From NCBI GenBank assembly GCA_964057225.1, contig OZ059896.1:9796001-9860000 (forward strand): DNA of 64,000 bases. The letters are read 5' to 3'. Below the pieces are notes generated by a model. The model had not been told where the DNA came from. It did no database searches and saw only the letters and a list, made by a program, of their open reading frames with translations. This stretch comes from Auanema rhodensis (Eukaryota; Animalia; Nematoda). Position 1 is the first letter of the stretch. Each line of letters begins with the position of its first letter. The translations under genes were made by a program, and so were the position numbers. Below are positions 45,701 to 48,700 of this stretch, one piece after another.

Positions 45701-48700
45701 AATAATTAGTTTATAAACTAATGATTTAAGCACCAACTCCAAACTTTCACACGTTTCATGTTGAGACATCGGGATTCCTCAGGAGAAGGTGTCATCACCA
45801 ATGAATCAACGTATACAACGACAACCTGTTATAGATAGTATCTCCAACCCCTTTTCCCCACCCTTTTTTCTTTAAATTTCTTGCATCAGCATTATTGCGA
45901 AAATCTTTTTTCTCCATTTCAAGTTACATTTCATTAATTTGAAATAATATTATATAATAAGAAAACATAAACTTGAAAATGGGATGATTCCATGTTGAAA
46001 ACAAGGAAAAAAACATAATTGTTGATGTTATTATGAAAGCAAATGAGAGAAAAGATTGAAATGATAGACTTACAATTATTTTCATCATTACTTTCAATAA
46101 TACATGGCTTCGGATGGTTTGTGATTTGAGGCTGACGATTTCGATGAAAATTTGGATTACTGAGAAGGAACACAGTAAGACCAACTACGAAAAGCCATGT
46201 ATGCCATCCGAATAAAAGTGTCAGTATGAAGGGCATAGCCACTAACATGTATGAGCAATGTCTCTCATCATATTGTGTCATACAACTTAGATACTGTTGT
46301 AAATTAACAATTCAAGCTGCACTTCTATACTATTCTAAAATATAAGAAAAACAATATACATACAAACTTGAGCATTTTGTATATGTTAATATAATATGAA
46401 AAAAAGTTTTAAATATTAATTATAATGAAGAAAATAGATATTCTGAATAAAGATATTTAGATGGAACAATGATTTTTTCACATTATCGTCCTATCAGTGC
46501 GATACTTCACGCATTACATACACACTTGGGAAGAATCAAACATCTTAGAAAACTAATATTTGAGTCATCAGGTCATGAATATTCATCATAATAACTCAAC
46601 AGAACTATATATATATTTCCATTTTTTTGAGAAAATATATACATATCTTACATATATAATGAAATATAATATAATCAAGAGCATGAAAATCAAATTAATG
46701 AAAAGGCAAAGTATCGCAGTTCCTCAGAGGCTCATCTCTTTTGTCTGTAGTGTTTCTGTGTATGTGTTTGTGAGACTTTTGAGTGTGTGAAGGACTTTTC
46801 AATCTATACATCTATCCAGATATCTAGTCTATCTCTTACTCTAACTTCTCTCACTTTGGCTTCTTCCTCATTCGAAGCCCTTGTGTCTGTTTTATCTCTT
46901 GTGGTTGGTTCGTTGTCTTTGGGTGTAATCTGCTAGACAACAGTGAAGCAGAAGGACCACAAGTATCTTCTCACTGATTTTGCGCAGTATTTAATACCTC
47001 CAAACAAAAGCTGTAAATTGGAGAGTTGTGCAGTTTTCTATCCCTCAATCTATTGAATGATAACAGATTCAGATCTAGGTGATTGCTTAATTCAGCCAGC
47101 AAAATTACAATTTTTATTTCTTCCAGACATTAAAGCGATAAATATTATTCACATTAATATTGACTAAACACCCAAAAGTTTGAAATTAGATAGACGTAAA
47201 TTAAGAAGCAGTAATAAGTAATATTCATAGATTTCTACTTCAAAATTGGATACTTTCTCAAAAGAAATGTAACAATGATTTGAGAGAAAATATATTTAAT
47301 AGGAGAGATTGTACTTACTCTCATCTATATTGATTCCATTTTTAAAAGGATCAAACGGTATTTTCTTTTCAAGTTGAGCTAATTCAGTTTCTACAACTCT
47401 CGTTACAGCAGTGGCATCAACTACAGAACGTAAGCCATCAGATGGTTGTTCTTTCTTAGGTTTTCGTCGTATACGTAGAGATCGTAGTATTCCATCAACC
47501 ATGTTTGAGGTTGTATAACCTTATGATAGAAGAATATTTTTATCACTCGTACATTCTAAAGTAATTGTATTTGATCCAAAAATACGAAAATGAAAAGAAG
47601 TTATAATCAATATAATATGTTTCAATTATAAATTCGCTGCAAAATATTTGAAAACGTAGAATATTTAACATATGTATATGTAATATATAGAGAATATTCT
47701 AATCCATTCGTGGATAATGATAAACAGATTTAAAAAAAATATAATTTATCAATAATAAGATTAAGAAAAAAGTGTTTTTCTTTGAATTTGTATTGATAAA
47801 TATTGAATATGATGATGATGGCAATGCGCTATATTCATAATATAGTTTGCGTGAGCTTACATGCATACATGAATATACATTTAAGAATTGGAAAGAAGCT
47901 ACCTCCCATGTTTCGCTTTTTAGTGTTTTAAAAGCATTTTTCTATTAAAAATCCAATTAAATGTTTTTGCTATCTAAAGCTGTATATACATATGTAGATA
48001 TGAAATGTATATATCAATAAATGTATGTATGTATATAGAAAGATAAAGAGAGAATAGAAGAAATTAATATTATTGAAAGCCAGATGATGATGATGATGTG
48101 AAAAAACTTAATGAAAAATCTGATAAAATGTATATAATTATATAAATATATATAATTCTAATTATTTATAAAAAAAATTATGTTATAATGTGGCATGGAA
48201 ACATTTCGATTTTCAGAAATGAAGCCATAATAATATAATGAAAAAATAAAATATTAATGTTACAATAGCTAGAAAGCATGAAGTACTAGAAGAAGAAGAG
48301 AAATAGAATTACTGATATAGAGAATATTAGAAAATAATTTTTAGAACGAAAAAAAATGGATTGAGAAGGAACAACGAAGGTTTGAGAGTATGCTCGCTGT
48401 TCGTCCGAGAAGACACACACACAGCAGTCTCGTGTTCGTTGCCATCGCAACCAAGATCTAACATCCACTAATTTTTCTTTTCCTTTTACAGAGAAATGCT
48501 TTCAAATGCACGTATGTAAAGAAAATTATACGATTAAGTAAAACAATAAGAGAACTAATTCGAAGATAATTTGAAGATAATTTAAAAAATTATTTCTATA
48601 AGTTTAGAATAATTTTGAGAAACTATTTCAAAAATATTAGAGCAATATGATTATAATGAATCAATTGTATTGCTTCAAAAGAATAATAATGTGATGAAAA

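Follow-up and report, generated by a model that had tools for sequence, protein, structure and literature searches.

We analysed 64,000 nucleotides (nt) of the Auanema rhodensis contig OZ059896.1 (positions 9,796,001 to 9,860,000, hereafter the window), which has an unc-43-type CaMKII gene on its minus strand. The subject of this analysis is a small conserved segment (46281-46074) that sits inside this gene, downstream of all its kinase and regulatory exons; window coordinates below refer to the minus strand. From the comparisons presented here, we consider it likely that 46281-46074 truly codes for protein and serves unc-43 as an alternative first exon, which would start a kinase-less, membrane-anchored hub (association domain) protein. 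A sequence-only reading of the window had likened this candidate to alphaKAP, a product of the vertebrate CAMK2A gene (Bayer et al. 1996, 1998, as summarised in PMC5882894 and PMC9913510). Comparison with other nematodes lent support to this view through conservation of the exon in Auanema sp. JU1783, similar exons in strongylids, and public gene models in which such an exon is joined to the linker and hub.

The candidate exon opens with an ATG at 46281-46279 and runs for 69 codons, leaving a single base (T, 46074) ahead of a GTAAGT splice donor at 46073-46068, which is therefore in phase 1. The shared linker exon begins at 45045 after the acceptor tgtttag, and its first two bases, GT, complete the split codon, so that the candidate-to-linker junction is in frame. 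This junction would read TGT (Cys) followed by RNLLNKKE, and the frame stays open from the candidate through the linker into all four hub exons. The sequence-only reading was thus correct in placing the donor in phase with the linker and hub, but mistaken in giving the joined sequence as GRNLLNKKE, since the split codon encodes Cys and not Gly. Its other two structural claims were borne out. The ATG is preceded, at a distance of 12 nt, by the end of an acceptor-like acaacag (46294..46300), from which phase 0 is open as well; this site could act as a trans-splice acceptor or as an acceptor in the 5′ untranslated region (UTR). The encoded peptide has a short N-terminus of acidic character, continues with a hydrophobic segment of 30 residues (residues 11-41; Kyte-Doolittle 19-residue maximum 1.93), where about 30 had been claimed, and ends in a basic/polar tail. 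By hydropathy prediction alone, the peptide has an N-terminal hydrophobic anchor.

Searching with the first exon 49741-49366 as query gave Auanema, Heterorhabditis and Nippostrongylus proteins, and from these we obtained genomic loci for comparison; the sequence searches were run exon by exon and not on the joined isoform. The nearest relative fetched was Auanema sp. JU1783, which matches the window at 30 of 30 residues in hub exon 2, 31 of 32 in the linker exon and 52 of 53 in the AAISAVKM exon. In the set of fetched loci, tblastn aligned the candidate with L001:12529-12675 of JU1783 at 51% identity over 49 residues, with no gaps (E = 5e-15). The Smith-Waterman score of this match was 143, compared to 42.9 ± 4.1 in 300 shuffles (maximum 57), placing the real protein score 24 standard deviations beyond the shuffles, and it was obtained in one frame only. 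Identity by codon position was 61/87/50%, with synonymous differences at many conserved residues, and over a 120-nt ungapped alignment it was 85-87% at position 2 versus 50-53% at position 3. The JU1783 exon ends in an identical T/GTAAGT, also in phase 1, and the similarity between the window and JU1783 ends at this donor. Together, these comparisons show an exon under protein-level constraint, with a conserved donor and phase, and a frame that runs into a complete hub. The sequence-only reading had called for a search of related unc-43 loci and had named lack of conservation of frame or hydrophobicity as evidence against it; what the search returned was an ungapped frame and a conserved donor in JU1783, with substitutions of the coding type.

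A second conserved block, 46634-46932, lies upstream of the candidate and is about 67% identical to L001:12035-12323 by blastn. Global realignment of this block gave even identity in all phases (0.75-0.77), and many of the gaps had lengths not divisible by 3, indicating that the 3-periodicity is specific to the candidate exon and not general to conserved DNA in this region. The block holds a conserved AA/GTGAGAGAA and may be a promoter or a non-coding 5′UTR exon of the hydrophobic isoform. A search of Rfam found no family in 45046-47318, a range that includes the block. An in-frame cassette of 78 nt at 46938-46861 was considered as coding and rejected, its JU1783 copy having stops and frame-shifting gaps.

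The composition and rarity of the frame were also assessed within the window. The GC content is 37% in the candidate exon versus 26-27% in its 500-nt flanks. Open frames of at least 60 codons running from an ATG to a GTRAGT donor number 5 in the whole window on both strands (128 kb), and 3 of these 5 fall in unc-43, on the minus strand and in phase 1. Taken with the JU1783 alignment, this indicates that the candidate exon is more than a chance open reading frame (ORF). Past the linker exon, at 42859-42646, there is a separate phase-1 ATG-to-GTRAGT frame of 71 codons; with its very AT-rich, repeat-like sequence (MYIYIYV...), it is probably due to chance.

Using the linker part of the Heterorhabditis model as query, we recovered kinase-less gene models, and an ATG-started hydrophobic exon was found ahead of the linker in five strongylid species. 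In the four with genomic loci (Ancylostoma ceylanicum, Ostertagia ostertagi, Dictyocaulus viviparus and Angiostrongylus costaricensis), the exon occupies the same intron position, with an ATG at its start and a strong phase-1 donor at its end. Among these strongylid loci, an exon resembling the hydrophilic first exon 47502-47319 was detected in A. ceylanicum and O. ostertagi alone; in both it precedes the hydrophobic exon. The Nippostrongylus brasiliensis model Q1695_007522 (P0011, 296 residues) joins the hydrophobic exon directly to the linker exon and then to CaMKII_AD, with no kinase domain; the Angiostrongylus cantonensis UniRef model P0012 has a similar layout, and a 77-residue A. ceylanicum model consists of 42 codons, the split codon and 34 linker-exon codons. 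These three models show that relatives hold predicted products with the architecture of the candidate (ATG, hydrophobic segment, split codon and linker, with the hub in P0011), although they are unnamed automatic predictions whose similarity to the window exon is weak (hhalign P = 0.0021). The description of the isoform as hidden thus applies to the window genome, but not to the relatives, which already have such models.

The hydrophobic segments of these three models follow the pattern YW.VW...YLY..[KR]P. In Caenorhabditis remanei, a 42-codon ATG-started hydrophobic frame (L004:4880-5006) ends in G/GTTAGT, phase 1, and is tentatively taken as the counterpart, in this one Caenorhabditis species only. 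Overall, the donor phase is kept in seven species, a hydrophobic segment of 17-23 residues is found in 8 of 8 compared sequences, and Kyte-Doolittle 19-residue maxima range from 1.3 to 2.45 across seven relatives. In the window and JU1783 the segment is followed by S-N-P, with basic residues later. A top profile hit in N. brasiliensis (L002:17621-17800) has no ATG and is not hydrophobic, and was judged to be due to chance.

Several observations weigh against the proposed isoform. Hydrophobicity is not rare here, since 7 of 60 ORFs of this AT-rich window score as high as the candidate, and in A. ceylanicum the hydrophobicity of the segment is no more than borderline. A search for sequencing runs found only four tiny ones, with 4% of the sampled words. 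Similarity between the rhabditid-type exons (window and JU1783) and the strongylid-type exons is weak, the hhalign match extending over 21 columns, and HMMER profiles of the two types do not recover each other. They have only a short pattern in common (W-x-x-W, L-F, an aromatic-Leu pair and P-x-F), and their orthology rests on identical position and architecture rather than on sequence by itself. A HMMER search of 1.84 billion representative proteins found no relative of the exon peptide, its three matches being repeat proteins judged spurious; clustering at 50% identity may hide the isoform under a representative that shares the hub, and this blank is therefore not taken as absence. A word search with the exon peptide, covering proteins of 38-120 residues only, was also blank. 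Finally, in both the window and JU1783 the frame is open back to a phase-0 acceptor, and a C-S-x-x-L motif is conserved upstream of the first JU1783 ATG, so that the start codon and first-exon use are not proven in these two genomes.

Of the alternatives, the one that survives best accepts the kinase-less hub protein as real but not its segment as a stable transmembrane anchor like that of alphaKAP. The segment might instead be a signal peptide that is cleaved off, a signal-anchor for peroxisomes or the mitochondrial outer membrane, or an aromatic helix at the membrane interface with a partner protein as its ligand. At about 17 residues, with many Y and W and with borderline Kyte-Doolittle values (1.3-1.7), the strongylid segments are compatible with such a role, and the conserved W-x-x-W ... 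P-x-F is more specific than a generic anchor requires. The window, JU1783 and C. remanei segments nevertheless score 1.9-2.45 over 19 residues, and in strongylids and C. remanei the segment is immediately followed by a K or R, which fits a cytosolic hub, even though net flank charges are mixed. We know of no precedent for a secreted hub, and we regard this alternative as unlikely.

Slightly less probable is that the segment is an internal alternative exon of kinase transcripts, with splicing between the phase-0 donor at 54917 and the acceptor at 46294/46293, which would place a hydrophobic insert in the linker of a full-length kinase. The frame permits this in both genomes: in JU1783 it is open for 35 codons from tttag/GAG at L001:12439, the first ATG coming at 12544, and upstream of this ATG the C-S-x-x-L motif is conserved. 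That first ATG aligns with window residue 14, and M16 is common to both sequences. Against this, A. ceylanicum, O. ostertagi and C. remanei each have an in-frame stop 2-9 codons ahead of the ATG (in the first two, a TGA at two to three codons), with no AG between, which excludes use as an internal coding exon in these three species. The public models begin at the hydrophobic exon, and entry from the phase-1 donors of other upstream exons meets a stop within nine codons. A membrane span at this place would also be expected to put the kinase and hub on opposite sides of the membrane.

We consider it very unlikely that 46281-46074 is an untranslated conserved element or a chance ORF. It would then act as an enhancer within the intron or as a 'poison' exon causing truncation of kinase transcripts, and its open frame and hydrophobicity would merely follow from AT-rich composition. 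Elsewhere in this intron, blocks are about 67% conserved with JU1783 without coding, and the frequency of hydrophobic ORFs, the blank protein search and the lack of RNA support would all be compatible with a non-coding element. Against this stand the 120 nt of ungapped alignment with strong 3-periodicity, the synonymous changes at conserved residues, the protein score so far above the shuffles in a single frame, the donor phase kept across species, and the end of conservation at the donor. The least probable alternative, an independent small gene lying within the intron and encoding a membrane protein unrelated to CaMKII, draws on an unspliced ORF of 115 residues (46281-45937) that passes the donor by 46 codons in the window and by about 90 in JU1783, but past the donor there is no similarity between the two and GC falls to 27%, no such product is on record, and the models of the relatives splice to the linker exon.

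Under the kinase-less, membrane-anchored hub protein that we favour, the transcript would start at the candidate exon, by means of either a dedicated start site or trans-splicing, and translation would begin at the ATG of the exon (M1, or possibly M12 or M16). A phase-1 splice to the shared linker exon and then to the four hub exons would give a product of about 240-275 residues, with an acidic N-terminus and one membrane-spanning segment, a flexible linker and a complete hub, and without the kinase and the calmodulin-binding segment. The segment would be expected to insert with its N-terminus outside and the hub in the cytosol, where the hub could co-assemble with kinase-bearing UNC-43 subunits and so tether holoenzymes to the membrane, as alphaKAP does in vertebrate muscle. 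In a wider form of this proposal, to which we give an even chance, clade V nematodes, from Auanema-like rhabditids to strongylids and possibly Caenorhabditis, keep an independently evolved analogue of alphaKAP. This analogue would dock UNC-43 holoenzymes on a specific membrane by means of a hub-only subunit with a W-x-x-W...P-x-F transmembrane helix, produced from one of several internal first exons.

alphaKAP lacks the kinase domain through an alternative start and not through exon skipping, and consists of an N-terminal hydrophobic anchor, a linker and a complete association domain, by which it tethers holoenzymes (PMC5882894, PMC9913510). The candidate resembles it in being encoded inside a CaMKII gene and in its predicted hydrophobic anchor, linker and complete hub with no kinase. 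It differs in coming from the single unc-43 gene of a nematode, in the unrelated position of its anchor exon, and in having several sibling kinase-less first exons that feed the same linker exon. The different lineage and unrelated exon position suggest that the two isoforms, likened here by architecture, are probably convergent. A Pfam search of the exon peptide gave only a sub-threshold YwiC match, a features search of the ESM Atlas with the exon gave nothing above 0.79, and exact look-ups of the 115-residue ORF and of P0011 returned no record. The missing CaMKII-related match to the exon among the 1.84 billion representative proteins argues, at the level of sequence, against detectable homology to vertebrate alphaKAP.

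Kinase-less products are themselves not new to this gene, WormBase being reported to list 36 unc-43 isoforms, many of them without the kinase domain (PMC10457463). The short Caenorhabditis UNC-43 isoforms, including C. remanei CRE_23837 (P0008), join internal first exons to the RNLLNKKE linker and the hub, with no kinase. Their first exons are hydrophilic and basic, whereas the candidate encodes a membrane-type segment; the window exons 47502-47319 and 49741-49366 belong to the Caenorhabditis short-isoform type, CRE_23837 being of the 47502-47319 type. We found no literature linking unc-43 to alphaKAP, to a membrane-anchored or transmembrane isoform, or to internal promoters. So far, alphaKAP has been regarded as peculiar to vertebrates and to a single CaMKII gene. 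If the proposed isoform is real, anchoring by mixing in kinase-less hub subunits would have arisen more than once, as a recurrent animal solution, and would become accessible in a genetically tractable worm system in which deletion of a single small exon could probe CaMKII tethering in neurons or muscle. By the same token, unc-43 alleles, knock-ins and conditional knock-outs built around the first kinase exon would spare hub-only products.

The coordinates of the locus are collected in the table below.

Table. Exons and conserved segments of the unc-43 gene in the window and their counterparts at the JU1783 locus (prefix L001); a slash marks an exon boundary.
Feature	Position	Strand	Remarks
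Kinase exons	about 59.8-56.7 kb	minus	
Regulatory-segment exon AAISAVKM...	55075-54917	minus	phase-0 donor; one of two alternatives
Regulatory-segment exon GAILTTM...	52256-52214	minus	alternative to the AAISAVKM... exon
Hydrophilic alternative first exon	49741-49366	minus	phase-1 end G/GTGAGA
Hydrophilic alternative first exon	47502-47319	minus	phase-1 end A/GTAAGT
Conserved non-coding block	46634..46932	minus	350-650 nt upstream of the candidate ATG
Candidate hydrophobic alternative first coding exon	46281-46074	minus	ATG, 69 codons, extra base T
Conserved exon core, residues 9-53	46123..46257	minus	motif TLLFGW..WLF..G...F.LSNP.F in common with JU1783
Linker exon RNLLNKKE...DSDK	45045-44947	minus	phase-1 acceptor and phase-1 donor
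Optional 96-nt linker cassette	43274-43179	minus	phase 1 to phase 1
Four hub (association domain) exons	40562-39798	minus	first with phase-1 acceptor matching the linker donor
JU1783, counterpart of 49741-49366	L001:10016-10408		same exon order as the window
JU1783, counterpart of 47502-47319	L001:11585-11722		same exon order as the window
JU1783, counterpart of the candidate	L001:12529-12703		between the counterpart of 47502-47319 and the linker exon, as in the window
JU1783, linker exon	L001:13421-13516		same exon order as the window

The linker exon is the common splice target of the alternative first exons, and C. remanei and four strongylids match it at 28-29 of 32 residues. The first exon 49741-49366 is conserved in JU1783 (66%), Heterorhabditis and Nippostrongylus, and 47502-47319 in JU1783 (70%) and, more weakly, in strongylids. 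A short ATG-started frame at about 45795-45736 (block 45880-45732) is 75% identical in JU1783 (L001:12985-13044) and may represent one more alternative first exon, the fourth, spliced to the linker. The linker cassette segment is also present in P0007, P0008, P0010 and P0013. Taken one by one, the hub exons cover Pfam CaMKII_AD positions 2-24, 24-55, 61-95 and 95-128, each scoring 22.3-46.7 bits against the PF08332 gathering cut-off of 22.1, and the third matches the C. elegans K11E8.1d hub (PDB 2F86; E = 5.5e-15). The CaMKII protein of the window differs from C. elegans UNC-43.

Two further observations concern the kinase and regulatory part of the gene. An (AC)n microsatellite at 54830-54915 lies a few bases past the donor of the AAISAVKM exon. 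Tandem kinase exons at 58005-58109 and 58495-58674 carry two versions of the catalytic-loop region, and both are found in the same order in JU1783 (L001:3533-3616 and L001:3170-3262; 100% and 97% identity). They look like a conserved mutually exclusive pair that would alter the HRDLK loop.

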